Part shown: in pieces, positions 21,170-63,400 of the stretch
Position numbering within the stretch: the first letter of the stretch is position 1
How the letters are laid out: the number at the start of each line of letters is the position of its first letter
From: Hydrolagus colliei
Taxonomy: Eukaryota
Assembly (NCBI GenBank): GCA_035084275.1
Contig: CM068742.1
Span: forward strand, 154,690,001-154,754,000
Length of the DNA stretch: 64,000 nucleotides
Direction of reading: 5' to 3'
Translations under genes and position numbers: made by a program
Notes under the pieces: generated by a model
The model's input: the letters and a program-made list of their open reading frames with translations, nothing else
What the model was told of the DNA's origin: nothing
Database searches by the model: none

Positions 21170-21207
21170 CTCCGGCCTTCATCCTGACTCTGTCCATCAT
21201 GGCTGGT
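21170..21207 (+). pseudogene. C2 exon stub of psi1
   Basis: Same breakpoint (GGCTGGT|CCACAGAATTAG) as 1816-1853. Confidence 0.85.
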
Positions 21208-29724: not shown

Positions 29725-30422
29725 AATTGTACGGAGATTCTACCATCAGAACCGTCGATGACAGTGAGTGTTGTCTACCTTTTCTGGTTTATTGTTTATC
29801 CTGTCTCTTCTCCGCTCGCACTCTGGCTCTGGGTCAGGAGGAGGGGTATTGAAGCCTCTACGTTGGGGAATTTGAGGTCACACAGTCCAGGCTGATGCTC
29901 CAGTGCAGCAATGGGGAGAGCGCTGCATTGTCAGAAGTGCTGTCCTTTGAATGCGATATTAAACTGAGATCAAGTCCGTGTCTGATGAAGTTGTTTTGGT
30001 CTGCCACGTGCAGAAACACATCTGTTTGTCAAGAGGATCAAAACTTGACTGAGAGTTCCTGTCACCTGTACATCTGGAATGCAATGTGCTGTTGAGAAGG
30101 GAATTTATCTCTCCTTGTGTCCTGGCCATCATTGTTTCAAATAAAATTGGTTGCTCACTTCATGGCTATTTGTTGGACATTTCAAACACAAATTGGGCAC
30201 CAGGTTTGCTGGTAAAATACACATTCACTACAATGGACTGTTTTTCTTTGAGATATATGGACTTTATATTAATATGAGGTTTCGAGTGACTTTAAGTTGG
30301 TCACACAGTGTATCACAGCTCTCAGCAAGTGGAGGTACATGTCCTGACTCCATTTTGTTTCTCTTCTAGATGTGATTTATGCTGTCGTCGCCAAATCAAA
30401 GAGGAGCTCAGCTGAGCAGTGA
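29725..30422 (+). pseudogene. Gene B tail exons 5 (29725-29763) and 6 (30370-30422), downstream of the stop
   Basis: Splice sites intact. YGN->YGD. VIYAVV retained but untranslated. Confidence 0.7.
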
Positions 30423-34880: not shown

Positions 34881-35260
34881 ATTGGCTGAAGGGAAGCCAA
34901 TATATACTATATGCTGTAGTGCAGTGACCACTTGCCTCACAACCACAACAAACTGACATTTGTATGGTGCCTTTCATGTCATAAGCAAGAGAGCTGGGTT
35001 CAATTCCCAGCAGGGTGAAATTTTGGCCAAGTTTCCTGACTCCACAAGCCTCTATTTAACAAGCCAGTAAGTGGGAACCTGGTTGTTAGTCGATTGGCGA
35101 ATGGCTTTTCTGGGAATAATAATTGGTTTTAAAAAATTAAAAATCAATTGACCAATTCAATCAATGATTGTTTGTGGAATACTTCTGTGCTGAATTGTGG
35201 ACTGATCTTTGAGACGACAAATGCACATGATTATTAATGATGACCTGGAGTTGTAGACCT

Positions 35261-39321: not shown

Positions 39322-42300
39322 ATGATGCTGGGAGCTGTGCTCTGCGCCCTGGTCCTGTCAGCCTCTGCCTTACGTACGTACTTTCCAATCAGTAACTATG
39401 ATAACTGCTCACACGCGATTGTCACCTCAATGCTCGACTCTGGCAACTCCCTCCTTGTCGGCCTCCCCAACTCTTCCCTCCACAAGCTGCAGATAATCCC
39501 AAACTTTGCAGCTCGTGTCCTCTCCCACAACAGGCTGTGTGACCCCCCCATCATCCCTGCCCTTGCCCGGCTCCACTGGCTCCTCGTCCCTCAGAGAATC
39601 GAATTGAAGATCTTCGTACTCACATCCCTCCTACCTCGCTGACCTGCTGATCTATCTGTTACCTCCGTTCAGCATACTCCAGCCTTCTCCATACCTCTAA
39701 CCCAGCCTGCCATTCCTTCTTTGGCGGGCTTTCAGACTCCCTGCTCCCACGCTTTGGAACTCTACCGCATAATCCCTCCAGCTTGCTTCCTTCCTTACCT
39801 CCTTCGAGGCTGGTCTCAAAACCCTCCTTTTTGACACGTCTCTTCAGCTACCGTCCTAACTCTCTCTGCCCACTCTCAATCCCAACCCTGGGTCCTGAGC
39901 CCACCTCCCCCATTCTTGGGTGAGGTGGGAACCTAGGGAACCTCTCCCTACAGGAAAGGCGCTCTACAAATGTGGTAGTTATTGCTGTTTATCTTTTAGT
40001 AGAATGTTTACCGAGTCAGGTGACATTTAGAAATAAGATTCTTGCTATATAAATCAAAGATGTTGTTGTTGTTGTTGTTGTTGTTGTTGTCTTTAACATT
40101 GACAGACCAGCCTCTGAGTGAGTTACTCACTGAGCCTCACAAGGCAAGTGTGTGTTTGTTAACTCTGCCTCCATTTGATTTCCCGAACCTCTCTCTGTTT
40201 TGTCTATGCTGCTTTTCGCTCCCCACTGGAGATCTTTACTCAAATTTGATTCCCAAGAGTTAGTATGAGGTAAACTATCTCTTACTCCCAACGCACATTC
40301 TGGAGTCCACAATACTTTTGTTTCATCCTGCATCAGACATCTGGTTGACAACAAATGATGGTATTTTTATAGTACACCCAGACCAGGATTTTTTTTTTTC
40401 CACAAGCCACCCATTCTAACCCTCTAACCCATCACTCCCCTTTCCCCACACCCTTAATATTCCTCCTCTTCAAACATCTATCCAATTCCCTTTGATAGAC
40501 TTGATGGACGATGCCTGAAATCCAGTTTGTGGCAGATAATTCCACAATTCCACTCATTCTGTGTAAAAACAGGGAAAACCAAAGTGTTTGTTAACTCTCT
40601 GCCTCTAGTTTAGATGTTTTAAGCTCCTCATAGTTCCTTTTTGGCGATGGTATTACATGCGTTCCTCTCGTGACTGTCTGACTGATCTATTGTCAGATCA
40701 GCTAAAATTGTTTGCTATTTCCCCTGTTGTGACTTGTTGTGACCTCTATCTGGTCGTCCCAAACCTTCTCAGTTCTTGAGCCACCAATCTCTCAAATCTC
40801 ACTTCAGATCTGAAACCCCTCATCTCTGGGAAAGTGCCAATAAACTAGGATACTAGGCTTTATAAATAGGGGCATAAAGTACAAAAGTCAGGAAATTCTG
40901 ACTAAACTCTACAAGACTTTGGTTAGGCCTCAGCTAGATTACTGTGTACTATTCTGGTCACCACACTTTAGGAAGGATGTTAAGGCTTTGGAAAAGGTGC
41001 AGAGGAGATTTACTAGGATGGTACCAGGAATGAGGGACTTCAGCTATGAGGAAAGGCTAGAGAGACTAGGTTTATTCTCATTGGAATAAAGAGGTTGCGA
41101 GGAGACCTAATAGAGGTTTATAAAATCATGAGGGGATTCGACAGGGTGAATAGGGAAAGACTGTGTCCACTGGTGGGCGAATCAGTGACTGGTGGTCACA
41201 GATTTAAAATAGTTTCAAAAAGAAGCAGAGGGGAGCTGAGGAGAAATGTTTTCACTCAGCGGGTTGTTGGAATCTGGAATGCATTGCCTGGAAAGGTGGT
41301 GGAGGTGATTCATTAACAACTTTTAAGTGAGGTAGACATATATTTGGGGTGGATGGGTTTGTGAGGTTATGGAGAGAGAGCTGGGGAGTGGGATTAAATT
41401 GCTCTTTTTAAAGTGCCGGCACAGACTCAATGGGCAGAATGGCCTCCTTTTGTGCCGTAAGATTCTTTGTATTTTTTTCATTGTTTTTATATCCTTTTTT
41501 ACAGGGATCCCCAAACTGTCTACAGTACTCCCAGCTGTGACCTAACCAAGCTCTTGTGCAAGCTCAGTGTTGCCTGTTTGCTTTTATATTGTGTTCTGGT
41601 TCACATTACACCATGTGTGTCCTCACAGGGATCAGTGTGAATGGCTGGACAATGGAGACCCTGATACAGTGACTGGCAGGTTAGGGTCACCAGTCATCAT
41701 GTACTGCAAGTTCACTCACCCTCACCCCAGATACACAGGCAACATCACCATCATGTGGAAGGGAGGCTGGGCTGGTCCTGTGTATTTTAAATATACAAAC
41801 TATAGGCTGGATTCACAAGGAAAGTATCAAAATGTCATTGATGTAAATGAGGGAGATCGACACCGAGTGATTGGGAACCCGAGGAAGAACGACGCTACAA
41901 TAAAGATAAACCAGCTGAGGGGAGAGGACACTAATAAGCTGTTCTCCTGTCGTGTGGAGCTCCAGGGTGAGGACGAAAATGTTGAAACTGGCCCCAGAAC
42001 ACGTCTATATGTTACAGGTGAGGAACGATGGGAAGTGGGAATCATTCCTGACTAGTGCCGGAGTCAGTGGGAAGTATCTCACCCAGCATGGGCAATACGC
42101 AGCTAGTGTTCCCAGTGAAGGGAGTTTGTATGAGTTTGTATCAGCCTAATTGACAGGACTTGGAAGTGCAGACTAGTCACTTGGGGCAGGGAATCCTCCC
42201 ACTCATCTTATTAACTGCACTGACCAGCTGGACAAACAATAGCAACTTGCATTTCTATAGCGCCCTTCACGCAGCGTTGTGTCTCAGAGGGCTTTGGGGC

Positions 42301-45300
42301 GCTATTCTGCATTCAGGGCACGATATAGGCACCCTAAACAGCAGGAAGCTTGCCATACAAGCTTGCCAGCTTGTCAATGGCAAACTATGCTGCGGAGTCT
42401 AGTGGTGAAGCAGTTAGAGTACTCGTTTCTCTTTATGTAACAACAACAACAAGTTACACTTATAAAGCGCCTTTCACGTCGGGAGGACGTCCCAAGGCGC
42501 TGCACAGGAGGCGTGTGACCCGAGCTGGGAGGGGAGTGTACGGGAAGGGGTGAAACAAGTAGGGGAGTTCGAAGAATTCGGGGTGGAACAAATATAATTG
42601 TATAATATACAATATATTCTGGTAAGTATATATACAGTATATTCTGCAAATGTTTTGAAATTAATAAATGATGTGACATGGTGCTATATCAAATACAAGT
42701 ATTATTATACTGTTTTAATTGGGTGAACTACCAACAGTTAATCCAACACATACACTGGGATCCTCAAACCTTGTACTAGTCAAAATGTGGATAATACTCT
42801 CTGAATTAGATACTCTGAGTGTATATATATCTACATATATATATGGAACTCTCACTAGTTAAGTTATTCTTAACAATGGTGACATATTTCAATACCACAC
42901 AAGAGATTTTCATGTATGTTGGTCATTCATTTCATAACCTTTGAGATCTCTGATTAGACTAAACTAACTGCGAAAGAGTCACTATAGCTATGTGTAACAA
43001 ATTCTTATATTTACTTTTACACTATCACATTTTCTACACATCTTAAAGCACTTTACAGAATACACTATAACGTGAATTGAATGTATCTTTTGTTGGCAAA
43101 CTACAGCAGCCAATTGCACAGAGTGCCTTCCCACAAACAGTGACAAAATCTTTGTTTGAAGAATTATTACCAAGCAAAGAAATACGCCAATCGAAGAAAA
43201 AATGGGTTCCTATGTACCCTTAGGTAAACAGAGGCATGTGGACTAAGGAAACCTACCCAAAATATTGCCCTTCCCAGGAATCAAACTCAGGTCCTCTATT
43301 TTGTGCGGCAAGTGCTCTAAGCTGCAGGACTTACCAGTAAGAATGTTATCGGTGCTATAAAAAGCCCACGTTTAATGTGTGAGATGGTGCTGCACACAAC
43401 ATCAGAGAGGAGCACAGGCATGAGGGAGATGGTGCCATGAAATGCAGAAATATACAGGATTTCACAGGGTGTAACATGTACTGTGTCACACTGACTGCTC
43501 TGCATTATTCCAATCCTCTTCCTGTCTCAGGTCATGAAGAGAAGCTCCCATCAGTGACTGGTACCAAGGGAGGTGATGCCACACTGCCCTGCTCCTTCAC
43601 CAGGCCCAACACATACCAGAATCCTAGCACAGTCACAGTGATTTGGAGGAGAGGGAGGCCAAAAGGGCAGCCACTTGCTAATGACACTCTTGACCTTTCC
43701 GCCCGCTCCGACCCCAGGGAGTCAGAGACAGTGAATGAAGGAAATCGCTATAACCTGGTCGGGAATGTAAGGGATGGAGATGCTTTCCTGAGGATCAGGG
43801 ACCTGGAGTTAAACGACACCGACCGGTATTTCTGTCACGTACACGTCATGTTTATCTATGGTGGGCACCAACAGGACCATGTGACACAGGACACGTCACG
43901 GCTGCTGGTTGTTGGTAAGAAATCTCTTGTCTCTGTGGGACATGGAAAGGGTGCAGTGGCATTGGTATCAATGCCACTTGCCATTGATACCAAGTGGCAT
44001 TGGTATCAATGGTATTGATACCAATACCATTGGTATTGGTATCAATACCAATGATACCAGTGGTATTGATACCAATACCAATACCGATTGGTATTGGTAT
44101 CGGTCCCAATACCAATCGGTATTGGGACCGATATTGGGGGATCGGTCCCAATACCGATCCCCCAGGGATCGGTATTGGGACCACTGCACTTTTTAATATA
44201 TATTAATGATCTGGACTTGGGTGTAGGGAGCACAGTTTCCAAGTTTGCAGATGATACTAAGTTAGGGAAAATAGTAAATAGTGAGAATAGTAAATAGTAA
44301 CCATCTGCAATAGGATATAGATAAAATGGTAAAGTGGGCAGGCACATGGCAGATGAAGTTTAATGCAGAGAAGTGCGAGGTGATACATTTGGGGAGAAGA
44401 AATGAGAGGAGGCAATATAGGCTAGAGAGTACAATTTTAAGGGGTGTGAGGGAACAGAGAGACCTTGGGATTTGTGTTAGTGACTCTTTGAAAGTGGCAG
44501 GACAGGTAGTCAAAGCTGTTGGATATGGGATACTAGGCTTTATAAATAGGGGTATAGAGTACAAAAGTCAGGAAGTGCTGACTAACCTCAACAGAACTTT
44601 GGTTAGGCCTTAGCTGGAGTATTGTGTCCAATTCTGGTCACCACATTTTAGAAAGGATGTTAAGGCATTGGAAAGGGTGCAAAGAAGGTTTACTAGAATG
44701 GTACCAGGATTGAGGAACTTCAGTTATGGGGAAAGGCTAGATAGGCTAGGTTTATTCTCTTTGGAACAGAGGAGGTTGAGAGGAGACCTAGTAGAGGTTT
44801 ATAAAATCATGAGGGGATTCGACAGGGTGAATAAGGAAAAACTGTTTCCACTTGTGGTCACAGATTTAAAATAGTTTAAAACGAAGCAGAGGGGATATGA
44901 GGAGAAATGTTTTCACTCAGCGGGTTGCTGGAATCTGGAATGCATTGCCTGAAAAGGTGGTGGAGGCCGCTTCCATAACAGCTTTTAAAGAGAATTAGAT
45001 CTTTAATAAGGGAGAACAGGTCTGTTAGGTTATGGGGAGAGAGCTGAGCAGTGGAATTGAGTTGCTCTTTTCAAAGAGCCTGCACAGACTAGATGGACTG
45101 AATGGCCTCCTTTTGTGCTGTAAAATTCCATGATCTTATGATTCTATGATTCCTTACCCTGTGCCTCACATGCTAATTAGCAGAAGAAACATGTATTTTA
45201 TTGGGGGGCATGGATTCTTCCCACATCTCCCATTAACCCTACAGACAAAGTTAGGGTGATCCTAGCTGGACAAGCAGCAGTATCTTGCCAATGACATGTA

Positions 45301-48300
45301 ATGTGGTTTTCACAAGATCACAGGATTGGTCTGAATGAAGAAAGACCATCCTATTTTATCCTTATGGAACCTCCCCAATTGCCCCCTAATCATTACCAAC
45401 CCCAAAACCAGTATCAAGCGGAGTCTAAAAGTCTGCAATTGCTCTGCCTGAAGGCAAATTGGATAGATACGTAAAAAGGAAACATTTTCAGGGCTCTGGG
45501 GTAAGAGCGAGACAGTGGGACTAGTTGGTAGCTTAGTACATCCTGTAGCTTGGCGCACTTGCCTTGCAAGCCAGAGGACCTGGGTTTGATTTTTGCAGAG
45601 GGCAAAACATTGGGCAAACTACCTTACTCCACATGCCTCTGTTTACCCAGCAATATGTACAAATCCAGTTGTTAGTTGATTGGCAGATAATTTTCTGGGT
45701 ATAATAATCTCTTAAAATTTGGTCAATCACTACTGGGGGGAAATTAGCTACTGGATTTCACCCACAAAAATATACAATCAATTCACTTGACAGTATATTC
45801 TGTGAAATGCTTTGAGATGTCTAGAAGATGAGAAAAACTCTATATTAAATGCAATTATTATTACTAGTATTAGTAGTAAATATAAGGATGATTATGTACT
45901 TTAGCTCTTTCAAAGAGCTGTTGCAGAGACAATGGGTGAAATGGCATTCTTCCTGCTATAAGATTCTGTGATATTAATAAGGAATGATTAAGTATTTGAA
46001 CATTATCAACGAAAAAGTACATGAAAAAAGCAGACAATGGGATTAGACAGAAAACAACAACAACAAAATTACATTTGTATAATGTCTTCCATGTTTCTTT
46101 CATGGGATGACATCCCACACATACCATTGAGTAAGTGACTATCAGCAGATATGATGGTGAAAGTTATTTAATCAGAATAACTCTGTGTTTCTTTATACCC
46201 AAAGCTCCGGCCATCATCCTGACTCTGTCCCTCGTGGCTGGTGATGGAGCCGGAGGTGGCATCGTGTGCACGGCTGAGGGGGAACCACCAGCCACCATCA
46301 CATGGATCGACCCCCAGAATAACACGCTGCCCGTCAACAACCACACGTCAATCACACATATACCAGACACACATCTAACCGTGGGGGAAATATGGGGCCT
46401 GAGGCTGAGGGGAACTTATTGCTGTGTAGCTGAGAACACACAGGGCAATGACACCCGAGACATTCTCACTCCTGGCCCACAGAGTGTTGGGGACAGGGAG
46501 AGCGATGGGGACAGGGAGAGCGATGGGGACAGGGAGAGCGATGGGGACAGGGAGAGCGATGGGGACAGGGAGAGTGGTGGACACAGTAATGTATATGTCG
46601 GGGTCTCCATTGTGGTGCTGCTTGTTCTGCTGATTGCCTTCATTGTCCATTGGGTAAAGAGAGGTAGGTGTTTACAGATGTAGTGATTATGTGGATTTGT
46701 GGATTCCTGTAGCTCAGTGGTCACTGAGTATTCGACTTACAAACATGAGACCTGCGTTCAATTCCAGGCAGGATGAAACATTTGCCAAGTTTCCTTATTC
46801 CACACGCCTGATAATAATCACTCAAATAATCAATAATAAATTGGTCATTTCAATCCATGACTGTTTGTGGGGACTCTACTGTGCGCAATTGGCTGCCACG
46901 TTTCACCCACAAATATACAGTTAATTCACTTTACAGAATATCCTGTGAAGCACTTTGAGACGTCGATAAGATGTGAAAAGCGATATATCAGATGCAAGGA
47001 TTATTATTATTATTCCAAGCGATACCAGCTCAGCCACTCGCATTCTCACCTCTGACTCAGCAAATATTCTGCCATATACACACACTGGGTAACCACATAA
47101 TAATAATAAGCAGAAGGAGAAGAAGAAAAATTCTTGCGTTTGATATTGCCAGCCGGTGGTATATCTGGCTTCCTGTTTAGTAACCATAATTACACCACAC
47201 AATAGGAAGAGAACAGTTTGCCACAAGTCTTTCACTGGAATAACATACACACTTACCAAACCAGCAAAAGATCTAAAACAATATCAAATGAAATAATTAT
47301 TATTAGGATTATTATTATCCCTCACCTTTCTTTGGTCTCTTCAGGTGTCAGAGTTTCCTGCCAGCATTCAGAGAGGTGAGTGTGTCTTTCTAATGCATTT
47401 ACTTTTCCATTGACATTCAAGTTGCCAATGGCTGTTGAGCATCAGGTCCGGCAAGCTTCCTGCGTCTCTTTCCAGCTATGACCACCCCACCCATTGGGGC
47501 TTTGGCTTGTAGGGTTAACAGAAGATGAGTAGGAGGATTCCTTGGCCCCAGTGGCTAATCTTCCCATCCAATTCTAGTCTGACCCCCACCCCACCCATCC
47601 ACTGCCACCACCCAAATGACAACTTGTGTCTCCTTCATGGGGGTAAAGCAGGATCTCCTCACTGCTGAGCTGGCTCCAGGGCAATATTCTTTGCAATATA
47701 ATTTTATTCTATTTAAGAGGTATATCACGACACCTGGAACTCTCAGCTAAAACTACTTGCACTCGTTTCCACCCTTTCAAAACCCTAAATCAATGTGACA
47801 GTGAACAGTTTCTCACTCAACGTGGACTCCTGCCCCTTCTCTCTGAAGTGATTGGGGAAGATCTCTGATATGAAAGACACTGTATAAGTGCAAGTGGCTG
47901 TTCTTGAATCTCCATTGCTCCTCGTCTGTAGCTTTGTATTAACCACCCTGTAATGCGTTGCCTAGAACTCCACACAATCCTGTGGCCGCACTGAGGCTTG
48001 GACCCTTCAGAGAAGAGGCTTTCTCCCTCTGTCCTGGCCAACAATCCCTTCAATAAATTTGATCACTCACTTCACTTCATTCACTTCACTGGTGTTATTC
48101 TCAGTTCTGTAGCTCAGTGGTTAGAGCACTCGCCTTACAAGTGTGAAATCTGTGGTCATATCCAGGCAGGTCAGGGCAAAAGCTTGGGCAAGTTTCCTTG
48201 ATCCACACGCCTAATATAAGCCCTCAAAAAACCCCACAATAATCAAATTGGTCATTTCAATCGACAACTATTTGTGGGACACTGCTGTGCGCAATTGGCT

Positions 48301-51300
48301 GCCATGTTTCGCCCCCAAATATACAATTAATTGACTTTACAATATATTCTGTGAAGCGCTTTGAGATGTCTAGAAGACGAAAAAAGCGCGACATCAAATG
48401 CAAGGATTATTATTAATAAAATACGCAGTCACTATTACACTACTGCAGCAAATCATGTGAAGTGCTATAAGATGTCCTCTTGACGTGAAAGACATTATAT
48501 CAAATGTGAGGATTATTAATTATATGGTTTTATCTTCCATCCTCTAAAAAATGTAAAATATAAATGTTTCTCTTTTTTAGTCGTCAAATGGATTTGGTTG
48601 TTGACAACGACTTGGTTCAACCTCAGCTGCCTACAGGAGACGGTAACTGTTTTATCTCGATTAGCGAGGGCACAATTTTCACACTGTATCTTCACTAACC
48701 CAGGGCTGGGTCTCAGCTTTGCTCAGTCAGTGACCCTCTCACCACTGGCTCTGGGTGTCAGACACACACAGAAACCCATCAATGCTTCAGAGTATCTGCA
48801 TCAGACTGAGAATGTAAATCACCTGCTCATCGACATTTCCATATATGGAATGGCGCACTCTCCCTCTCCATGGAGAGACTCATCCTGGTTACCTCATTTC
48901 AGAGAATATTCACACATAATGGCCATGGCCTGGGGACCTCACAGTGTCCATTGAGGTAACTGCAAGAGTTCAACACCTGAAGCCACATTGCCTGCCACAC
49001 AGCTTTCACATTCTCCCGACTTCACATTGCTCCACATTAAACTTTGTCTGCCACATGTCTGCCCATTTTACCTGTCTGTCTACTGTTGTGTCTCTGACAG
49101 ATGCAGCTGCTGCAATCTACAGCGTGGTCACTCCATCACCAGCTCGGCAATCAGGTTTAGGTAAGAAACATGTCACATAGGGACAAAGCCAGCATTGCCT
49201 CGCCTCTCAGCCGACAGGCAACTGCCTTCCCTTTGCTGGCTCACAAGGCAGCACTCTAACCTCTCAGTTAACCTCTCTGGGTCCAAGTGACAAATTAGAT
49301 CCTTCCACTCACAAACATCTAGCCTTGCACACCAGGGCAGTGCTGGAGGAGAAGTACATTGGGTTGCTTAAGATGAGATCCCATCAATGCCTGTTGAGGA
49401 GGATGTTAAAGATCTAGTGGCTCAATTGGAAAACACAAGGGAGCAGATAAATTTGGTCATTCATTTCACGGTTGGTTATGGGATGTTGCTGGATGCAAAT
49501 TGGTAGTCGCGTTTACCAACAACTACACAGTCACTACACTTTACGGTAGCGTGTGAGAGTAAGAAATGACATGCATTAACATATAACAAGAAACTGAAAG
49601 CCAATGGGAAAAGTGGAGTTGGACTAAAGGGAGAATCTTTCAGAGCCTCACAGGCATCAATGGCCCCCAATTACCACAATATCGTTAGATTCAGACTAAT
49701 TATGGAAAGGCATAAGGAACGATCACAGGTGAGGACACTCAACTGGAGAAGGGCTAATTTCAATGAGTTGAGGTGGGACCTAGCCAAGGTGGATTGGAAA
49801 GAAAAATTGGCAGGTAAGACAACTAACGAGCAGTGGGCAGTGTTCAAAGAGGAGATAGTTCAGGCACAGGTCAAAAGCATCCCCACAAAGGTGAAATGTA
49901 AGGCATCCAAACCTCCCTGGATGACTAAGGAAATCGGGGCCAAAATAAAACAAAAAAAAGAGGCTTGTGATAAGTGTCAGGCTCAAAATTCAGAAGGGAA
50001 CCAAGCAGAATATAGGAAGTGTAGGATAGAACTAAAAAAGGAAGTTAGAGGGGCAAAGAGACTGCATGAGAAACAATTAGCGAGTAAGATTAAGGGGAAC
50101 CCTAAGGTTTTTTACCAACATATTAAGAGTAAAAGGTTGGTCAAGGATAGGGTGGGGCCAATTAGGGACCTAGGAGGAAATCTCATTGTGGAGGCAGAGG
50201 GCATGGCTGATGAACTGAATGAGTACTTCGCCTCTGTCTTCACAAAAGAAAAGGATACAGCCAATGCCATAGTATTGGAGGAGAGGGTAGGAGAAATGGA
50301 TAGAATAATTATAACCAGAGAGGAAGTTCTAAAAAGGTTGACGTCGCTCAAGGTGGATAAGTCACCTGGTCCGGATGGGATGCACCCTAGGTTACTAAGT
50401 GAGGCATGGGAGCAAATAGCAGGGACTCTGGCCATGATCTTTCAGTCTTCCTTGGACACAGGGGTGGTGCTAGAGGACTGGAGGATAGCTAATGTTACTC
50501 CCTTGTATAAAAAGGGGCAGAAGGACAATCCTGGTAAATACAGACCAGATAGTCTAACGTCGGTAGTGGGGAAACTTCTAGAGTCCATAATCAGGGACAA
50601 GATAGATCTTCACTTAGAAAGATATAGGCTAATAAAGGACAGTCAACATGGATTTGTTAAAGACAAATCTTGACTTACAAATCTGATAGAATTTTTTGAT
50701 GAGGTAACGGAATGGGTGGATAATGGTAGCGCAGTTGATGTAGTTTACATGGACTTTCAAAAGGCATTTGACAAAGTGCCACATGAGAGACTTATTAGGA
50801 TATTAAAGGCCCATGGCGTAAAAGGGAAAGTGGCAGAGTGGATCCACAATTTGCTGCGAGACAGAAAGCAGAGAGTTGTAGTGAGCGGCTGTTTTTCAGA
50901 CTGGAGGGAAGTGAGCAGTGGTGTGCCACAGGGATCGGTTTTGAGACCATTGCTCTTTGTAATCCACATCAATGATCTGGACTTGGGTGTAGGGAGTACA
51001 GTTTCCAAGTTTGCAGATGACACTAAGTTAGGGAGAATAGTAAATAGTGAGGAGGATAGTAGCCATCTGCAAGAGGATATAGACAAATTGGTAAAGTGGG
51101 CAGACACATGGCAGATGAAGTTTAATGCAGAGAAGTGTGAGGTGATGCATTTTGGGAGAAGAAATGAAGGGAGGCAATATAGGCTAGATAGTACAATTTT
51201 AAATGGTGTGAAGGAACAGAGAGACCTGGGGATTTTTGTTAGTTACTCGTTGAAGGTGGCAGGACAGGTAGACAAGGCTGTTAAGAAGGCATATGGGATA

Positions 51301-54007
51301 CTAGGCTTTATAAGTAGGGGTATAGAATTCAAAGGCAGGAAGTGCTGACTAACCTCTATAAGACTTTGGTGAGGCCTCAGCTGGAATACTGTGTTCAATT
51401 CTGGTCACCACACTACAGAAAGGATGTGAAGACATTGGAAAGGGTACAAAGAAGATTTACTAGGATGGTGCCAAGATTGAGGGACTTCAGCTATGAGGAG
51501 AGGCTAGATAGGCTTAGGTTATTCTCTCTGGAACAGAGAAGATTGAGGGGAGACCTAATAGAGGTTTATAAGATCATGAGGGGTTTCGACAGGGCAAATA
51601 GAGAAAAACTATTCCCACTCGTGGTCGAATCTGTGACTCGTGGTCACAGATTTAAATTAGTTTCAAGGCGAAGTAGAGGGGAGCTGAGGAGAATTTTTTT
51701 CACTCAGCGAGTTGTTCAAATCTGAAACGCATTGCCTGAAATGGTGGTGGAGGCTGATTCGATAACAACTTTTAAAAGGGAATTAGATCTTTATTTAGGG
51801 AGAACAGGTCTATTAGGCTGTGGGGAGCGGGCGGGGCAGTGGGATTCAATCGCTCTTTTCAAAGAGCCGGCACAGACTAGATGGGCCAAATGGCCTCCTT
51901 TTGTGCCGTAAAATTCTATGAATCTATGAATCTATGAATTTGGCATAAATGTTCTGCTGGTATAAACAGGGCTGTAATGAGAGGGGAGCATTAGGGTCTG
52001 TCATGGGATGGCTGAGAGGGACTTTATAGAGGCTGCTGCTGCCCAGGGATATGGTGGAATGTGGCAAAGGGGAAGCTGAAGAGGGATGGAGAAGGTGCTG
52101 ACTGTTGTGTCTCTGACAGATGAAGCTGCTGTGATCTACAGCGAGGTTACCCCAGCACTGGCCAGGCAAACAGCTACAGGTAAGAAACGTATCACACAGG
52201 GACAGATCTGGCATTGTCTCACCTCTCAACCGACCTTCTCTCTCCTGACTGGGGTTAATTATCAGGCTGGCTCAGTTGGAAATACTCAGATAGCTGGTTG
52301 TGGTTTCAACATCCAAATTTGGTCGTTTACATGTAATCTACATGAGAAACTCCACATTATCGGAGGCGTCGTCCATCAGGCCCTGTTCAGGTGGATGTTA
52401 AATGTATCCTGTGGTAGAACAACAACAAGAAAATTACATTTGTAATTTCACATTGGACATCCTCCTGATGTGAAAGCCACTATACTATTACTACTAATAT
52501 ATATTATACTATTTTGTTGTTTTTGTTGTTTGGAGGGCGTCCCAAGGTATGTACTGTTAGAAAAGAGAAGGGAGTTTCTCTGGGTGTCTAGTTTAAATTG
52601 TTTATTTACTTAATGGCTAGTTGTGGGTCCAAATTGACTGTCGCATTCAACAACATAATTACATGTGTATGGCGCCTTTCACGTCAGGAGGATATCCCAA
52701 GGTGCCGGACAGTTACTGCTTCAGACCCGAGCTGAGGACGGTGAGAAGGAGGGGGGAAGGAGTTATCGATGGGTCCATCGAAGAGGAGTCTTGAGGCGAG
52801 ACTTGAAGGAGTCTAGTGAGGGAGCGAGGCAGAGGGATTTTGGGATGGAGCTCCAAAGGTTGGGGTCGAAGTGACTGAAGGCTCAACAAATACACAGTCG
52901 CAACTAATACAGTGAATCCTGGAACATGTCAGAAGTACTTTGATGTATTTTGACAATGTGATAGCACACACCGCTTTGCTGAGTCCTCCAAATGTGAAAT
53001 GGATAATAAATTATTGTTGCTGTTGTTGTTAAATCAAATGCCAGGAATAATATCCAATTGAGCATTGACCTCAGATTCATGGGGGTTGCTCACCAGCCCC
53101 CAGGGCCTGGCTTGTGTTTCCAATTCCCAGTTCACTGTTCATTCCTTGAACCTTTGTCCCAGCTTTCGGGACTGGGCTTCAGACATTAAAGCCTTATCTC
53201 TGGACTTCCACATACACAATAAATACAAACTCCATTTGATAACTAGTGTCATATTTCATTTGTGAAGCCAATTTCCAATTGCTAATTATTTACCAACATT
53301 GTCTGTCTCTCCTTCAGAAGTGTACGGAAATTCTACCATCAGAACCGTTGATGACAGTGAGTGTTGTCTACCTTTTCTGGTTTATTGTTTATCCAGTGTC
53401 TTCTCCGCTCGCACTCTGGCTTTGGGTCAGGAGGAGGGGTATTGGAGCCTCTACGTTGGGGAATTTGAGGTCACACAGTCCAGGCTGATGCTCCAGTGCA
53501 GCAATGGGGAGAGCGCTGCATTGTCAGAAGTGCTGTCCTTTGATTGTGATGTTAAAGTGAGATCAAGCCCGTGTCTGTTTTTTTGGTCAGCCACGTGCAG
53601 AAACACATCTGCTGTGGCAAGAGAATCCAAACCTGACTGGGAGTTCCACAAATATATCTCACCCTTTCAGATAGAAATTTCACCGCATCTGGAATGCAAT
53701 GTGCTGTTGAGAAGGAAATTTCTCTCTCCTTGTGTCCTGGCCATCATTGGTTCAAATAAAATTGGTCGCTCACTTCATGGCTATTTGTGAGACATTTTAA
53801 ATGCAAACTGGGCGCCAGGTTTGCTGATAAAATATGGTTTTAAGACATTATATTAAATATGAGGGTTCTAATGACTTTACCCAGGACACACAGTGTATCA
53901 CAGCTCTCAGCAAGTGGAGGTACATGTCCTGATTCCATTTTGTTTCTCTTCTAGATGTGATTTATGCTGTCGTCACCAAATCGAAGAGGAGCTCAGCTGA
54001 GCAGTGA
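39322..54007 (+). CDS. SIGLEC15-like: Gene C: Siglec-15-like inhibitory receptor with a multi-ITIM tail; V1 exon frameshifted (529 aa if repaired, 399 aa if V1 is skipped)
   Basis: Exons 39322-39373, 41629-42017, 43531-43914, 46205-46663, 47345-47375, 48581-48642, 49101-49160, 52120-52179, 53318-53356 and 53955-54007. All are phase-compatible except for the 1-nt deletion in V1. Confidence 0.72.
40848..41470 (+). mobile_element. Degenerate CR1 3' fragment upstream of gene C V1
   Basis: CR1 ORF2 C-terminal and 3' UTR homology with stops. Absent from other units. Confidence 0.85.
41629..42017 (+). pseudogene. Gene C V1 exon with a 1-nt deletion (389 nt)
   Basis: GAG ACC CTG ATA CAG TGA instead of GAG ACC CCT GAT ACA GTG. 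The rest of the exon is open, with FSCRVE. Confidence 0.8.
43531..43914 (+). CDS. Gene C V2 exon
   Basis: 384 nt open, YFCHVH. Confidence 0.9.
43952..44160. repeat. Nested fold-back (GGTATTG/CAATACC) inverted-repeat tract at a CR1 5' junction
   Basis: Built from both orientations of the adjacent CR1 5' sequence GGATCGGTATTGGGACCACTGCAC. Confidence 0.85.
44160..45152 (+). mobile_element. 5'-truncated CR1 LINE in the gene C V2-C2 intron
   Basis: [15 protein letters not shown]..[11 protein letters not shown] remnants and a CR1 tail. Confidence 0.9.
46205..46663 (+). CDS. Gene C C2/stalk/TM exon
   Basis: 459 nt open, [25 protein letters not shown]. Confidence 0.9.
46489..46578 (+). repeat. Coding 18-bp tandem repeat (GDRESD x5) in the stalk
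   Basis: GGGGACAGGGAGAGCGAT x4 plus one variant unit. Gene A has 2 units (8073-8108) and gene B has 3 (26491-26544). Confidence 0.95.
48105..48416 (+). mobile_element. tRNA-derived SINE specific to gene C
   Basis: TAGCTCAGTGGTTAGAGC head and aaatgcaagg(att)n tail. Confidence 0.75.
49101..49160 (+). CDS. Gene C tail exon 3 (AIYSVV, ITIM-like)
   Basis: tctgacag|ATG...TTAG|gtaaga, 60 nt, phase 1-1. Confidence 0.75.
   Translation: MQLLQSTAWSLHHQLGNQV
49674..51938 (+). mobile_element. 5'-truncated CR1 LINE between tail exons 3 and 4
   Basis: RT ORF broken by a stop at 50671-50673 and a frameshift near 51340. CR1 tail present. Confidence 0.95.
52120..52179 (+). CDS. Gene C tail exon 4 (VIYSEV, canonical ITIM)
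   Basis: tctgacag|ATG...ACAG|gtaaga, 60 nt, phase 1-1. Confidence 0.8.
53318..53356 (+). CDS. Gene C tail exon 5 (EVYGN, YxN motif)
   Basis: cttcag|AAG...GACA|gtgagt, 39 nt. Confidence 0.75.
53955..54007 (+). CDS. Gene C terminal coding exon (VIYAVV ITIM, stop)
   Basis: ttctag|AT GTG ATT TAT GCT GTC GTC ... CAG TGA. Confidence 0.8.
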
Positions 54008-55665
54008 ACTCTGGCCCCTCCCAGAGTCTGCTGTGCACAGTTTATATAGGTGTGTCCTGCAGTGACTTATATTGGGCCTGGATCAGCAGCCAATACAATA
54101 ACATTGTACAATCAGTCCCTGAGAGAGCACGGCTCATTACAGTCCCAGTGTGTTTGTAGTGTGGCTGTGGCTTGTGGCCTTGCTGTGTGTAAACACATGT
54201 TATTGCTGCCTGTGACCTGCAATTTACAATTGTGTTTATCTCCACTTCAGGGAAATCAAACATGAGGGGGTCTGTCTTGAAAGGAAGAGTCTATTGTCTG
54301 TCAGGAGGGAAACACTGCTATTTGGTGGACATTCCAGCATTGAATACTAAATTTTTGCACAGATACCTTAGATCTACCTTCAAATAAAAATATTTTTTGC
54401 TGTTAATATAGCGCCTTATCATATCTTTGAAACATCTCAAAGCGGACACAACACAGCATGCAATTGCTCGCATCATTGTCCCACAAACAGAAGTAGATTG
54501 AGTGACCAAATTATTATTCATTATCAAATTTTTGTAAGGGATAATTATCCTTAGAAGAACAATCTATCAATTGACCAACAATTGAGTTCTACTTATTGCT
54601 AGGTAACCTGAGGCGTGTGGAGTAAGGAAACATGCCGACGTATTGCCATTCCCGGGAATCAAACCAGGTTCCTGCAGGACTACACATGCTTAGAGATTAC
54701 CCGCAAAGTGTTAGACTAGTTTCTATATAAATGCAAATTATTGTGATTAACTCCCAGTGCTGCACAGTGTGTGCTGCCTTTACACTCTGGGCCACTGGGG
54801 GCACTGCAGGATCGTCATCAGTTCACAAACCAGTGGACAATCTGTCTCAATGTTTTCTAACTTGAGGAACGCAAGAATTAAAGAAGGTTCTTGAGACCGG
54901 CCTTGAAGGAGGCAATGTGGGACGGAGTACCAGAGTGTGACAGCAGAGAGACTGAAAGCCTGGCCACCGATGGTTAGAAACATTCAGACAGAGGCATGGA
55001 GAAGACTGGAGCCTAATGAATGGAGGGAGCCAGCTCCCAACCTTGCCTCCTCATCTACTCTCCTGTAGACGTTGAATTATCCTACCATCCCTTCTTACTC
55101 TCCCTGCCCTCTACCCCTCCTGATTCCAAGTCTCAGCTCAGAGTCAAATCCCTCACTGTCCAATGCTTTAGGACATCCTACCGACATGAAAGGCACTATA
55201 CAGATATAATTGGTTGTTGATATAATAATAATTCTTGCATTTGGTTTAGTACCTATCATGTGAGATGTCTCAAAGCGTTTCACAAATATTCACTGGAAAG
55301 TGAATTGACTTTACAGTGTATTCTGTGAAGTGCTTTGACACATTTGTAAAAGCACTATAGCAAATGCAAGGAATATTCTTATTATATAAATGGATTAATC
55401 GCAGCTACCGTAATGACCCCAAAACATTTGGGAAATGAGTGATCGTATCCCTGTTGTTTTCTTGTTCTTGAGGGATTGTTGTCCATGTAGACGTGTCAGG
55501 CTAATATCAGGCCACAAAGAGGTGTTACTGCTAATATGAGCCCTGTTTTCTTCTGGTTGTTTGGAGGTGTTAATATTCATATCAGTCTACATAGATATCA
55601 CATGATGTAGCAGTTTCACTGTTAATATCAGAGGTTATAGCAGAGGAGCAGAGGTTAATATCAGA

Positions 55666-56436: not shown

Positions 56437-57237
56437 GAGGGTCCGTCGATATGGAAATGTTCCGATTTAGATATATCGATGGGCTCATATCGAGATATAC
56501 CGATATATGGATATTTTCGGGGGTTTCGTACTGCTTATGCATGCGCGCATTCAGAGGTGTGCGCGCATTCGGGGCCTATCTCCTCAGGAGGTAAATATCT
56601 CTCTCTCTCTCACACTCACTCTCTCCATCTCTGTGTTTTTCTGTCTGTGTCTCTGTCCTTTCTCACATCCCCCCCCCCGCATCTATCTCTCTATCACATC
56701 CCCCCCGTCTCCCCCCCACCCACCAGTCTCTTTCTCTTCCCTTCCCCCCCCCCCCCCCCCACATCCCTGGTCTCTCTCTCTACTTCACCCCCACCCCGTC
56801 TCTCTCTCTACCTCCACCCGCCCCTCCTCCCCCCCCCCCCCCTCCGGTCTCTCTCTCCCTCCCCAGTCTCTCTCTCCCTCCCCATTCTCTCTTTCTCTCT
56901 CCCCCCCCACCCCTGTCTCCCTCTCTCTACCCCACCCCCCGGTCTCTCTCTCTCCCTCCCCCCCCCACCCCGGTCTCTCTCCGCTGAATCCCCCATCTCT
57001 CTCCCCTCACCCCTTGCATACCTGTATATTGTATTCTAGAACTATGAATACAATACGGCGGTTTTCACCTCGGTCTGTGCATTATGTATAGAGATGAGCA
57101 TTCTGGGTCTTGTAGTTCAGTGTGCGCGCATTCCGGTTTTCCGATATATCAACTTTTTCGGTATATCGGTATTTTTGGAATACGTATATCGGCATATCGA
57201 TATGAAAATTATATCCGATATAACTGATATATCGATA
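56437..57237. mobile_element. Possible non-autonomous DNA transposon (hAT-like) with an internal C/T-rich tract
   Basis: CpG-rich ends with many ATATCG/CGATAT repeats. Absent from the paralogous site (~38097-38280). No matching right TIR. Confidence 0.35.
56600..57015. repeat. Polypyrimidine / poly-C low-complexity tract
   Basis: (CT)n and C-runs up to about 20 nt. Confidence 0.95.
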
Positions 57238-58262: not shown

Positions 58263-60211
58263 ATGATGCTGGGAGCTGTGCTCTGTGCCCTGGTCCTGTC
58301 AGCCTCTGCCTTACGTACGTACTTTCCAATCAGTAACTATAATAACTGCTCACACGCGATTGTCACCTCAATGCTCGACTCCGACAACTCCCTCCTTGAC
58401 GGCCTCCACAACTCTTCCCTCCACAAGCTGCAGATAATCCCAAACTTTGCAGCTCGTGTCCTCTCCCACACTAGACTGCGCGATCCTATCACTCCCACCC
58501 TCGCCCGGCTCCACTGGCTCCCCGTCCCTCAGAGGAACAAATTCATACTCACATTCAAGTCCCTCCACCCTTCTACCTCTCTGACCTGCAGATCCCCTAT
58601 TAACCTACTTGTTCCTTCCATTCAGCAAGCTCCAGCCGTCTGCATGTCTCGCATTCGATCTATCCGACACATCTTTGGCGGGCTTTCAGGCTCTCTGCTC
58701 CAATTCTTTAGAACTCTATCACACTATCAATCCCAACTCTATCAATCCTTTTGCCTTGCTTCCTCCCTTGCGTCCTTCAACGCTAGCTTGAAGACCCTCC
58801 TTTTTGAGAGTCACTTCAGCCGCCTTCCTACCACTCTGCCCTCCCTCATCACATACCTTCCCCCCCCACCACATCCCCTATGCTTGGGTCCTGGCACCTG
58901 ACTGTTCAGTGCCTTGGGATGTCCAAGCGACATGAAAGGCCCTCTACGAATATAGTTGTTGTGGTTCTTTACCTTTTAGTGGAATGATTACAGAGTCAAG
59001 TGACATCCGGATATAAGATTCTTGTCTTTAACGTTGACAAGAATGAGTGAGTTACTCACTGAGCCTCACAGGGCAAGTGTGTATTTGTTAACTCTGCCTC
59101 CGTTTGATTTCTACAATCTCTCTGTCTTGTCTGTGCTGCTTTTCGCTCCCCACTGGAGCTCTTTACTCTAATCTGATACTCAAGGGTTAGTACAAGCTAA
59201 ACTAACAGTTAGCCCCAACATTCCTAGTGTACATAATACTTTTCCATCAGACACCTGGGTGACAACAAATTATGGTATTTTTATAGTACACCCAGACCAC
59301 AACAGCGTTTTTCTTTCCACTTGACAGACGTCCAGTTTGTGGCAGAAAATTCCACAATTCTACCCATTCTGTGTGAAGACAGGAAAACCAAAGTGTTTGC
59401 TTGTCAACTCTCTGCCTCTACTTGATCTGTTTTAATCTCCTCATAGTTCCTGTTTTTTGTGATGGTATTAGATGTGTTCCTCTTGTGACTGTCTGGCTGT
59501 TCTATTGCCAGATCAGCTAAAATTTGTTGTCATTTCCCCTGTTGTGACTCATTGTGATCTCTATCTGGTCGCCCAGAACCTTCTCCGTTCTTGAGCCACC
59601 AATCTCCCAGATATCTCTTTGGATCTGAAACCCCTAACCTCTGGGAAAATGCCGATAAACTAGCATTTTTTTTCCCATCGGTTTTATATCGTTCTTACAG
59701 AGATCCCCAAATTGTCCACATTACTCACAGCTGTGAACAAACCAAGCTCTTGTCCAAGCTCAGTGTTGCCTGTTTGCTTTTATATTGTGTTCTGGTTCAC
59801 ATTACACCATGTGTGTCCTCACAGGGATCAGAAAGAATGGCTGGACAATGGAGACCCCTGATACAGTGACTGGCAGGTTAGGGTCACCAGTCATCATGTA
59901 CTGCAAGTTCACTCACCCTCACCCCAGATACACAGGCAACATCACCATCATGTGGAAGGGAGGCTGGTCTTGTCCTGTGTATTTTAAATATACAAACTAT
60001 AGGCCGGATTCACAGGGAAAGTATCAAAATGTCATTGATGTAAATGAGGGAGATCGATACCAAGTGATTGGGAACCCAAGGAGGAACGACGCTACAATAC
60101 AGATAAATCAGCTGAGGAGAGAGGACAATAAGAAGTTCAACTGTCGTGTGGAGCTCCAGGGTGAGGACGGAAAGGTTGAAACTCGCCCCAGAACTCGTCT
60201 GTATGTTACAG
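58263..60211 (+). CDS. SIGLEC15-like: Gene D, 5' part: leader (58263-58314) and intact V1 exon (59825-60211)
   Basis: Leader identical to A/B/C. V1 is 387 nt open with KFNCRVE. Downstream exons are not in the window. Confidence 0.75.
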
Positions 60212-60406: not shown

Positions 60407-63400
60407 AGAACCTGGAGGCCGAGGTGGCCTTGTTGTGGGCAAATGCCGCAGTATTGGATGAGAGGGTAGAGGAAATAGATCAAATTACTATAGACAGAGA
60501 GGAAGTTCTGAAAAGATTGACTGAGCTCAAAATTGATAAGTCACCAGGACCAAATGGGTTTCACCCAAGGTTGCTGTGGGAGATACTGATTCAAATAGCG
60601 GAGGCTCTGGCCATTATATTTCAATCTTCATTGGACACAGGAGTGGTGCCAAGAGACTGGAGAGTGGCTAATGTTACCCCCCTCCACAAAATGGGGTAGA
60701 AAGACAAACCCGGAAATTACAGGCCAGTCTTACTTTGGTAACAGGAAAACTACTGGAGACCATAATCCGGGACAGAATAAATCTCTATTTAGAGGAACAT
60801 AGAATCATAGAATCATAGAATCATAGAATTTTACGGCACAAAAGGAGGCCATTCGGCCCATCTAGTCTGTGCCGGCTCTTTGAAAAGAGCGATTCAATCC
60901 CATTGCCCTGCCCGCTCCCCATAGCCTAATAGACCCGTTCTTCCTAAATAAAGATCTAATTCCCTTTTAAAAGTTGTTATCGAATCAGCCTCCACCACCT
61001 TTTCAGGCAATGCATTCCAGATTTGAACAACTCGCTGAGTGAAAAAATTTCTCCTCAGCTCCCCTCTACTGCGCCTTGAAACTATTTTAAATCTGTGACC
61101 ACGAGTCACAGATTCACCCACGAGTGGAAATAGTTTTTCTCTATTTGCCCTGTCGAAACCCCTCATGATCTTATAAACCTCTATTAGGTCTCCCCTCAAT
61201 CTTCTCTGCTCCAGAGAGAATAACCCTAGCCTATCTAGCCTCTCCTCATAGCTGAAGTCCCTCAATCCTGGCACCATCCTAGTAAATCTTCGTTGTACCC
61301 TTTCCAATGCCTTCACATCCTTTCTGTAGTGTGGTGACCAGAATTGAACACAGTATTCCAGCTGAGGCCTCACCAAAGTCCTATAGAGGTTAGTCAGCAC
61401 TTCCTGACTTTTGTACTCTATACCCCTATTTATAAAGCCTAGTATCCCATATGCCTTCTTAACAGCCTTGTCTACCTGTCCTGCCACCTTCAACGAGTCA
61501 CTAACACAAATCCCCAGGTCTCTCTGTTCCTTCACACCATTTAAAATTGTACTATCTAGCCTATATTGCCTCCCTTCATTTCTTCTCCCAAAATGCATCA
61601 CCTCACACTTCTCTGCATTAAACTTCATCTGCCATGTGTCTGCCCACTTTACCAATTTGTCTATATCCTCTTGCAGATGGCTACTATCCTCCTCACTGTT
61701 TACTATTCTCCCTAACTTAGTGTCATCTGCAAACTTGGAAACTGTACTCCGTACACCCAAGTCCAGATCATTGATGTAGATTACAAAGAGCAATGGTCCC
61801 AAAACCGATCCCTGTGGCACACCACTGCTCACTTCCCTCCAATCTGAAAAACAGCCGCTCACTACAACTCTCTGCTTTCTGTCTCGCAGCCAGTTGTGGA
61901 TCCACGCTGCCACTGTCCCTTTTACGCCATGGGCCTTTAATTTCTTAATAAGTCTCTCATGTGGCACTTTGTCAAATGCCTTTTGAAAGTCCATGTAAAC
62001 TACATCAACTGCGCTACCATTATCCACCCATTCCGTTACCTCATCAAAAAATTCTATCAGATTTGTAAGGCAAGATTTGCCTTTAACAAATCCATGTTGA
62101 CTGTCCTTTATTAGCCTATATCTTTCTAAGTGAAGATCTACCTTGTCCCTGATTATGGACTCTAGAATTTTGCCCACTACCGACGTTAGACTGACTGGTC
62201 TGTAGTTACCAGGCTTGTCCTTCTGCCCCTTTTTATACAAGGGAGTAACATTAGCTATCCTCCAGTCCTCTGGCACGACCCCTGTGTCCAAGGAAGATTG
62301 AAAGATCGTGGCCAGAGTCCCTGCTATTTGCTCCCGTGCCTCACTTAGTAACCTAGGGTGCATCCCATCCGGACCAGGTGACTTATCCACCTTGAGCGAC
62401 GTCAACCTTTTTAGAACTTCCTCTCTGGTTATAATTATTCTATCCATTTCTCCTACCCTCTCCTCTAATACCATGGCATTGGCTGTATCATTTTCTTTTG
62501 TGAAGACAGAGGCGAAGTAATCATTCAGTACATCAGCCATGCCCTCTGCCTCCACAATGAGATTTCCTCCTAGGTCCCTAATTGGCCCCACCCTCTCCTT
62601 GACCAACCTTTTACTCTTAATATGTTGGTAAAAAACCTTAGGGTTCCCCTTAATCTTACTCGCTAATTGTTTTTCATGAGGTAACTAGAGGCAGACAACA
62701 TGGATTTGTTGAAGGCAAATCTTGCCTAACAAATCCAATAGAATTTTTTGAGGAGGCGACTGCGAGGGTTGCTGAGGGAAATGCGCTGGACGTTATTAAC
62801 ATGGATTTCAAAAAGGCTTTTGACACAGGACCGCAGAAGAGATTAATAAACAAATGAGAGGCCCACGGTATTAAGGGGATCGTGGCAGTTTGGAATAAGA
62901 ACTGGCTGAGTGACAGAAAGCAGAGGGTGGTGGTTAATGGGTGTTTCTCGAAATGGAAGGAGGTGAGCAGCGGTGACCCCCAGGGATCGGTATTGGGACC
63001 ACTGCTATTTCTAATATATATTAATCATCTGGACTTGGGCACAGAGAGCACTATTGCCAAGTTTGCAGATGATACAAAGTTAGGTAGGGTAGTAAATAGT
63101 GAGGAGGACTGTAACCAACTGCAAGCAGACAAACACAGATTGGTGGAATGGGCTGACATGTGGCAGATGGATTTTAATATGGATAAGTGTGAGGTGATAC
63201 ACTTGGGTAGGAAAAATGATAGGAGGCAATATAGACTCGGTAGCTCAATCTTAAGGGGGGTGAACGTACAGAGAGATCTGGGTGTTCAAGTAAGCGAATC
63301 ATTAAAGGAAGCAGGGCAGGTAGATAAGGCAGTAAACAAGGCATTTGGTGTACTGAGCTTTATTAGTAAAGGCATAGAGTATAAGAGTAGGGAGGTTATG

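Follow-up and report, generated by a model that had tools for sequence, protein, structure and literature searches.

Tail exons of a Siglec-15-like gene of Hydrolagus colliei: a probable inhibitory-type cytoplasmic tail in a gene copy that is most likely recently disabled

Does a Siglec-15-like receptor of a cartilaginous fish carry the cytoplasmic tail of an inhibitory receptor, and is the gene that encodes it still intact? Siglec-15, which regulates osteoclasts and is a target in cancer immunotherapy, is regarded as an ancient receptor that signals through DAP12 alone and "lacks ITIMs" (immunoreceptor tyrosine-based inhibitory motifs) (PMC13711574). The question arises from a stretch of 64,000 nucleotides (nt) of Hydrolagus colliei (GCA_035084275.1, contig CM068742.1, positions 154,690,001 to 154,754,000 of the forward strand), hereafter the window, in which a first-pass annotation had read a six-exon tail with ITIM and YxN motifs at 47345-54007. 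We analysed this tail, the gene to which it belongs (gene C) and the relatives of that gene in the window and in other species. The tail exons are probably genuine and encode the cytoplasmic tail of an inhibitory-type receptor that belongs to a Siglec-15-like family, and the gene C copy itself has most likely been disabled recently; the family appears to have expanded in cartilaginous fishes.

Gene C comprises a leader, two V-set domains (V1 and V2), a single exon encoding the C2-set domain, the stalk and the transmembrane (TM) segment, and then six tail exons (E1 to E6), whose borders were placed from splice signals. Its features are given below, a slash marking an exon border within a sequence. 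Genes A and B are two further copies in the window, and L001 is the locus of LOC103188801 in Callorhinchus milii, whose protein XP_007907103 is called P0001.

39322-54007, plus strand: gene C.
39322-39373, plus strand: leader exon (17 residues and 1 nt), donor C/GTACGT, phase 1.
41629-42017, plus strand: V1 exon, V-set, 389 nt as against 390 in genes A and B; Siglec arginine kept (FSCRVE).
43531-43914, plus strand: V2 exon, second V-set, Siglec-15-like; histidine in place of the arginine (YFCHVHV).
46205-46663, plus strand: exon for C2-set, stalk and TM, ending ...HWVKR/G.
47345-47375, plus strand: tail exon E1, no tyrosine; homologues in A, B and L001.
48581-48642, plus strand: tail exon E2, no tyrosine.
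49101-49160, plus strand: tail exon E3, 60-nt ITIM cassette; AIYSVV, ITIM-like (AxYxxV).
52120-52179, plus strand: tail exon E4, 60-nt ITIM cassette; VIYSEV, canonical ITIM (VxYxxV); 88% identical to P0001.
53318-53356, plus strand: tail exon E5; VYGN, a YxN motif (Grb2-type), to be compared with TVYENCSTRASED of Heptranchias.
53955-54007, plus strand: terminal tail exon E6; VIYAVV, canonical ITIM; stop codon TGA at 54005-54007.
54383-54388, plus strand: AATAAA, a likely polyadenylation signal by sequence reading only, ~375 nt past the stop.

A Pfam search with gene C returned the V-set twice and the Ig/I-set once. The best solved relative of the ectodomain is human Siglec-15 (7ZOZ; E 2e-22, the next match being 4e-7), and V1 by itself matches human Siglec-15 at E 3e-14, with FSCRVE aligned to the arginine of YFCRVE. 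This arginine, R143 of the human protein, we take to be the conserved sialic-acid-binding residue. The database proteins nearest to gene C are annotated as Siglec-15 in sharks, rays and Xenopus, and the earlier assignment of a Siglec-15-like ectodomain, with its V1 arginine kept, is confirmed at the level of sequence similarity. The predicted TM segment (22 residues, about 46591-46656) contains no K, R, D or E and is followed by KR. In the stalk, a perfect 18-nt tandem repeat (46488-46574, 4.8 copies, 100% matches) encodes GDRESD five times; this repeat is shorter and imperfect in A and B (DNESDGDNESNGD; GDRESDRDKESDGDKESDG), and stalk length differs between copies.

Every acceptor from E1 to E6 consists of a pyrimidine tract and AG, and the donors of E1 to E5 are gtgagt, gtaact, gtaaga, gtaaga and gtgagt, so that eleven of eleven tail splice signals are canonical; all introns are phase 1. 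When the AG/GT-bounded exons are joined, they give a peptide identical to the one that had been proposed. The tyrosine codons lie at 49118, 52137, 53323 and 53963, one in each of E3 to E6; the description of one tyrosine per mini-exon therefore holds for these four exons and not for E1 and E2, which have none. The resulting tail of 107 amino acids (aa) contains two canonical ITIMs (VIYSEV and VIYAVV), one ITIM-like motif (AIYSVV) and one YxN motif (VYGN), as had been called. If an ITIM receptor is defined as a type I membrane protein that combines an uncharged TM segment with one or more (I/V/L/S)xYxx(L/V/I) motifs in its tail, gene C has the make-up of one. E3 and E4 are tandem duplicates that differ at 14 of the 60 exon positions but agree fully in the 19 nt upstream of the acceptor and in the donor gtaagaaac, and both retain the ATCTACAGC core (IYS). 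Such a pattern would be expected if selection acted to keep both splicing and the tyrosine core.

The protein closest to gene C is P0001 of C. milii, listed as an "uncharacterized protein", which shares 70% identity over 98% of the query and also has an ITIM tail. This tail reads ...SHQVDLSVENNMVRPQPSAGD, followed by a 20-residue cassette, DEAAVICSVVPPAPARQTDS and a 17-residue terminal segment, and its tblastn matches in the 64-kb window are exactly E2, E3, E4 and E6 (E 5e-5, 5e-3, 7e-5 and 2e-4). At L001 we found E1', E2', two 60-nt ITIM exons and E6', with AG/GT borders at the same places as in the window and with the cassettes flanked by ...gtgtctc(t/g)(g/a)acag on the acceptor side and gtaagaaacgtatcac on the donor side; five of the six mini-exons are thus present, with identical borders, in another chondrichthyan genome. 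A third C. milii locus, LOC103188796 (L002, MU249832.1 137,747,800-137,788,011), has two ITIM cassettes and lies between two genes with a lysine in the TM segment. Both L001 and LOC103188796 are paralogous to the window and non-overlapping, with 77-91% nucleotide identity. They share with gene C the domain order, the uncharged TM segment, E1, E2, two 60-nt cassettes and the terminal exon, and differ from it in lacking a YGN exon and in having frames that are intact from the initiating methionine; in LOC103188801, a cysteine also replaces the tyrosine of the second cassette. Within the window, homologues of E1, E2, E5 and E6 are found in genes A and B, and E3 and E4 are missing from both. Cassettes of the E3/E4 type thus appear to be ancestral in the holocephalan copies and to have been lost in A and B.

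Elasmobranchs have similar tails. A V-V-C2 ectodomain, an uncharged TM segment and a tyrosine-rich tail occur together in Heptranchias perlo (named "Siglec-12" X2/X3 in the databases), Heterodontus francisci ("CXADR-like membrane protein"), Mobula birostris and Narcine bancroftii. These tails are repeats of the module D-x4-(I/V)YS-x-(V/I)...(R/Q)Q-x-x-(T/S), which is 20 aa long in the chimaera and 24 aa in sharks; a single 24-aa module with one tyrosine is what distinguishes isoform X2 of Heptranchias from X3, as expected of cassette exons. The repeats are followed by a YxN motif in three of the four elasmobranchs (TVYENCSTRASED in Heptranchias, SLYSNV in Narcine and QLYSNA in Mobula), and Heterodontus has SLHGNV at this position, its tyrosine replaced. 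The terminal motif is DVIYATV in Heterodontus, AAIYAAV in Heptranchias, AEIYATV in Narcine, AAIYATV in Mobula and NVIYAVV in the window; a K/N-rich end comes after it, and the terminal ITIM is the most conserved tail motif across chondrichthyans. At the juxtamembrane end of the uncharged TM segment, elasmobranchs have FT(I/V)W.LK(R/K) and gene C has FIVHWVKR. The first-pass annotation had staked its tail on conservation in related species, and the tails found in both C. milii genes, Heptranchias, Heterodontus, Mobula and Narcine bear it out.

The same species also hold genes with a nearly identical ectodomain, a lysine-containing TM segment (...MLCLIPLVKFLLLLITGIILF) and almost no tail, just a few residues (IKIKD), which is the canonical DAP12-type design. 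A strict either/or runs through the family: a protein has either a TM lysine and almost no tail, or an uncharged TM segment and an ITIM-rich tail. When a maximum-likelihood tree is built from the V2-C2 regions of 24 proteins, the lysine and ITIM types pair by species (Heptranchias, 100/99; Heterodontus, 100/99; C. milii P0002, the lysine type, with P0001, the ITIM type, 98/98), and the ITIM label requires five changes for five rows, which is no better than shuffled labels. P0001 and P0002 are 90% identical over residues 1-373. The signalling halves are kept by type across species and the ectodomains are homogenised within species; at the level of the family, near-identical ectodomains, opposite signalling modules and grouping by species are all found, as in paired receptors. 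This clustering of ectodomains resembles that of paired receptors homogenised by gene conversion. We also considered that the activating and inhibitory forms might be splice variants of one gene, and set this aside: a lysine-TM alternative exon was sought in the window and in L001 and none was found. Because of this, and because lysine-type and ITIM-type genes are interleaved in the L002 cluster, the two forms are taken to be separate genes.

Some observations on gene C and its tail weigh against the reading given at the outset. Past the lesion in V1, which is described below, ~1.5 kb of gene C coding sequence is fully open. The first motif of the tail (AIYSVV) has alanine at position -2. The E5 exon is found in A, B and C but in neither L001 nor L002, and its motif has lost the tyrosine in A (HGN) and the asparagine in B (YGD). 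Identity between C and A/B forms a mosaic of 75-100% in which exons are no better kept than introns, and dN/dS (the ratio of nonsynonymous to synonymous substitution rates) for V1, V2 and C2 among A, B and C is 0.5-1.2; neither result gives a direct sign that purifying selection acts on gene C. Support for the splicing of the tail all derives from gene models, those of paralogous loci and those of other species, and, as the window has no lysine-TM exon, gene C's own partner was not found there. The high-identity tracts between C and A/B reach far past the exons, and the mosaic looks like the product of gene conversion, so that comparing exons with introns inside the window says nothing about selection. 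Tracts that are 97-100% identical among A, B and C lie at 46664-46813, in the intron after the TM exon, and at 53899-54258, which covers E6 and the first 250 nt of the 3' untranslated region (UTR), with flanks at 75-90%; these look as if they arose by gene conversion, or else reflect a conserved element of the 3' UTR.

What, then, is the state of gene C? One C is missing from the C run at 41659-41661, within the conserved NGWTMETPD motif of V1, and under the canonical splice from leader to V1 gene C does not have an intact coding sequence: it reads ...WTMETLIQ and stops after 31 residues. In C. milii, the RefSeq model of the paralogue has the leader donor and the acceptor of this splice, C/GTACGT and cacag/GG. 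The same C is missing in the V1 exons of two relic units of the window (17 and 19370), so that three of the six V1 copies share this state; for this reason a one-off assembly error is unlikely, and it was set aside as the explanation of the missing base. The open remainder of gene C could mean that the gene was disabled very recently or that its frame is rescued. Since the sequence after the deletion is open and the Ig hallmarks are intact, we think it quite likely that gene C is a recently disabled copy and not an old pseudogene.

The alternative that survives best is that gene C is functional, either because a second GT in the leader donor restores the frame or because the missing C is a homopolymer assembly error. 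The tandem leader donor GTACGTAC (39366-39381) has a second GT 4 nt downstream of the first (GTAC/GTACTT), and only its use would reframe gene C (+4 nt -1 nt = +3). Apart from the presence of this donor, the alternative draws on the fact that V1, V2, the C2/TM exon and all six tail exons are open after the deletion, that the deletion falls in a C run, and that gene C keeps the hallmarks YCKF...IMWKGG...FSCRVE, whereas gene B has lost the invariant V1 tryptophan and gene A has altered cysteines. However, the +4 donor has T at +5, which is weak when judged from the general consensus; it is identical in every leader exon (also at 2640, 17286, 21994 and 58307), so that nothing favours its use in gene C; and the RefSeq model of the paralogue splices at the first donor. 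Even the rescued frame would still replace NGWTMETPD, a conserved motif that chimaera, sharks and rays have in common, and the assembly-error route has to contend with the relic V1 exons at 17 and 19370, from which the same C is missing. We therefore hold a functional gene C to be possible and rather unlikely, and prefer recent disablement; in annotation, the gene C tail should be assigned to an intact gene only if complementary DNA supports it.

What would the tail do in an intact member of the family? The motif (I/V/L/S)xYxx(L/V) recruits SHP-1 and SHP-2, and pYxN recruits Grb2. We envisage that the ectodomain, which would bind sialic acid, engages a sialoglycan beside an activating receptor and that Src-family kinases then phosphorylate the tail tyrosines. 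VIYSEV and VIYAVV would recruit SHP-1/SHP-2, AIYSVV perhaps also, more weakly, and pYGN would recruit Grb2, so that signalling would be damped. Genes of the gene C type would thus be the brake half of a pair whose partners are the lysine-TM, short-tailed DAP12-type genes of the same cluster, with gene conversion keeping the ectodomains of the paired genes alike. The tyrosines might instead serve mainly as YxxPhi sorting or endocytosis signals, or deliver a Grb2-coupled positive signal, without recruiting SHP phosphatases: IYSVV, IYSEV and IYAVV all fit YxxPhi, and a YxN motif is also present in the tail of the activating canonical Siglec-15. However, the strict split between lysine-TM proteins with short tails and uncharged-TM proteins with ITIM tails is the signature of an activating/inhibitory pair, and two of the motifs match the full six-residue ITIM consensus, which makes this alternative improbable and leaves an inhibitory role as the preferred reading.

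The first-pass annotation had called the tail CD22-like. CD22 has a V-set domain and six C2-set domains, and the tails of CD22 and Siglec-10/G combine ITIMs with a Grb2-type pYxN; gene C resembles both in having several ITIMs and such a motif in one tail, and differs in its number of Ig domains (three, against 5 to 7) and in the absence of detectable tail similarity, so that the likeness is one of motifs only. A tail homologous to the cytoplasmic domain of CD22 or Siglec-10/G, inherited or acquired by exon shuffling, would account for this combination and for the small-exon structure, which also resembles that of CD22 and Siglec-10/G. However, a word search restricted to TM and tail (proteins of 0.55-1.75x query length) returned the family member P0001 as its sole match, with no link to CD22 or to any other family, and three Ig domains are not the CD22 architecture. 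Lysine-TM Siglec-15 proteins also have a conserved S(T/N)YEN in their tails: ...AQESNYENLSQM in the golden mole (ESNYENL), LQDSTYENF in a bird cluster of 76 members and RQESTYENV in lungfish. This motif, shared by mammal, bird and lungfish, also fits SxYxx(L/V/F), and AQQTVYEN of Heptranchias is similar to the mammalian AQESNYEN. The term CD22-like can therefore stand for the combination of ITIM and YxN motifs and not for descent; we consider homology with the CD22 tail very unlikely, and suspect that the YxN exon is an old element of Siglec-15 tails rather than a loan from CD22.

A reading in which the tail exons are never spliced, being dead remnants or segments that happen to be open, is hardly credible: it would agree with the frameshift in gene C and with the absence of E3 and E4 from A and B, but not with eleven canonical splice signals and phase-1 introns throughout, with the match of E2, E3, E4 and E6 to a RefSeq protein of another locus at identical boundaries, or with E3/E4 splice flanks that are perfectly kept despite 14 differences in 60 exon positions.

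Around gene C, the window is a tandem array of Siglec-15-like units in which every complete copy (A, B and C) is damaged. The other units are as follows.

1-1853: relic unit (leader, V1, V2 and partial C2), upstream of gene A.
2596-12064: gene A.
17242-21207: relic unit (leader, V1, V2 and partial C2), upstream of gene B.
21950-30422: gene B.
58263-60211: gene D, start only; the remainder lies beyond the window.

Genes A and B, each with its own relic, form a segmental duplication of ~19.35 kb. Both have TGA at the end of E2 (9982-9984 in A and 28436-28438 in B), where gene C has GGA (48636-48638), as does the C. milii paralogue; the tails of A and B terminate at ...QPQLPT, ahead of all tyrosines. 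Apart from this TGA, their frames are open from the methionine, and they may be tail-less decoy receptors or targets of nonsense-mediated decay. This part of the array looks rich in pseudogenes. The relic V1 exons have frameshifts and an insertion of ~30 nt, with V2 merely ~80 nt downstream of V1, and the relics keep a 5' piece of the C2 exon. Degenerate extra leader copies (ATGATGCTGGGAGCTGTGCTCTGTCCCT(A/G)G...) were found at 1937 and 21291; they precede the real leaders of A and B by 660 nt, and one of the two has an in-frame stop. Gene D has an intact leader and a V1 of 387 nt, an in-frame shortening by 3 nt; its C run counts four C's, its arginine motif is FNCRVE, and LINE (long interspersed nuclear element) fragments follow.

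A young LINE with reverse-transcriptase ORFs (open reading frames) lies at 49673-51937 on the plus strand, in sense orientation within the E3-E4 intron. The window holds two more copies, at 35260-37514 and 60805-62678, both on the minus strand, with which it shares 96% identity; an open ORF of 596 aa is present in a LINE copy at 60897-62684 on the minus strand. More LINE fragments occur at 4887-5483, 40848-41472 and 44160-45149. A tRNA scan for the heads of short interspersed nuclear elements found none. At 56765-56982 there is a CT-rich low-complexity tract with a period of ~24-31 and long Pro/Ser-rich open frames on the plus strand, which is probably simple, non-coding sequence.

How old are the two designs? 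Lysine-TM forms are found in chondrichthyans and in every sarcopterygian outgroup examined, so the activating design is at least as old as the jawed vertebrates; the inhibitory design is present in both chondrichthyan subclasses and hence dates at least to their common ancestor. Its deeper age is hard to read, because conversion of the ectodomains erases the signal of the tree. The suggestion that the ancestral Siglec-15 lineage was inhibitory is not supported by this distribution, with lysine-TM forms on both sides and the two types paired; the data suggest that the ancestral lineage was paired rather than inhibitory. Tentatively, Siglec-15 may have been half of an activating/inhibitory pair since the chondrichthyan ancestor, possibly since the jawed-vertebrate ancestor, with conversion acting for more than 400 million years; the S(T/N)YEN of tetrapods and the YxN exon would then be one ancestral tail exon, bony-vertebrate Siglec-15 the activating half and teleost siglec15l perhaps the other half. 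Pairs in chondrichthyans would carry the paired-receptor principle from the fast-evolving CD33-related Siglecs of primates to the most ancient Siglec lineage, in the most ancient group of jawed vertebrates, and would supply a definite hypothesis on YEN, a conserved but unexplained motif of the human Siglec-15 tail. RefSeq and Ensembl already predict these proteins, under names that say little or mislead ("uncharacterized", "Siglec-12", "CXADR-like membrane protein"), and a literature search, with most subscription journals outside its coverage, found no description of an ITIM-bearing chondrichthyan relative of Siglec-15 or of a Siglec-15 pair.

Among known systems, the nearest is canonical Siglec-15, which has one V and one C2 domain and K274 and is described without ITIMs, and in which no linker exon separates the coding parts of C2 and TM (PMC13711574). 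Gene C shares with it the motifs C.FTHPH...Y.G..T..W and GNPR.ND, the CRVE arginine of the F strand, a YxN motif in the tail, and C2 and TM without a linker exon, here in a single exon. It differs in its extra V-set domain (V-V-C2), in its 107-aa ITIM tail and in having no counterpart of human K274 in the TM segment; since this lysine is absent, no pairing with DAP12 is expected for gene C, and its lysine-TM relatives, with ...CLIPLVKFLLL..., are at other loci. Two further types of gene combine a CRVE arginine and an uncharged TM segment with tyrosine motifs: teleost siglec15l (Conger conger XP_061119044; tail with LYAN, a YxN motif, with IIYADI and with the ITIM VCYAEV) and the lamniform "Siglec-15" (Carcharodon XP_041041398; ITIM LDYSEV). 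Both have a single V domain and a different tail sequence, with neither the 60-nt cassette nor a terminal IYAVV-K, and they indicate that ITIM-bearing relatives of Siglec-15 are not confined to the V-V-C2 family.

Paired Siglecs of primates were reportedly described by Angata et al. in 2006. Siglec-5/-14 and Siglec-11/-16 are paired ITIM and activating genes whose ectodomains have been homogenised within species (PMC4042635). The chondrichthyan genes resemble them in joining an ITIM gene and a charged-TM gene with near-identical ectodomains that cluster by species. Unlike the primate pairs, which belong to the CD33-related lineage and to another vertebrate class, the chondrichthyan family is Siglec-15-like, and it has two V domains and a modular ITIM cassette of variable copy number.

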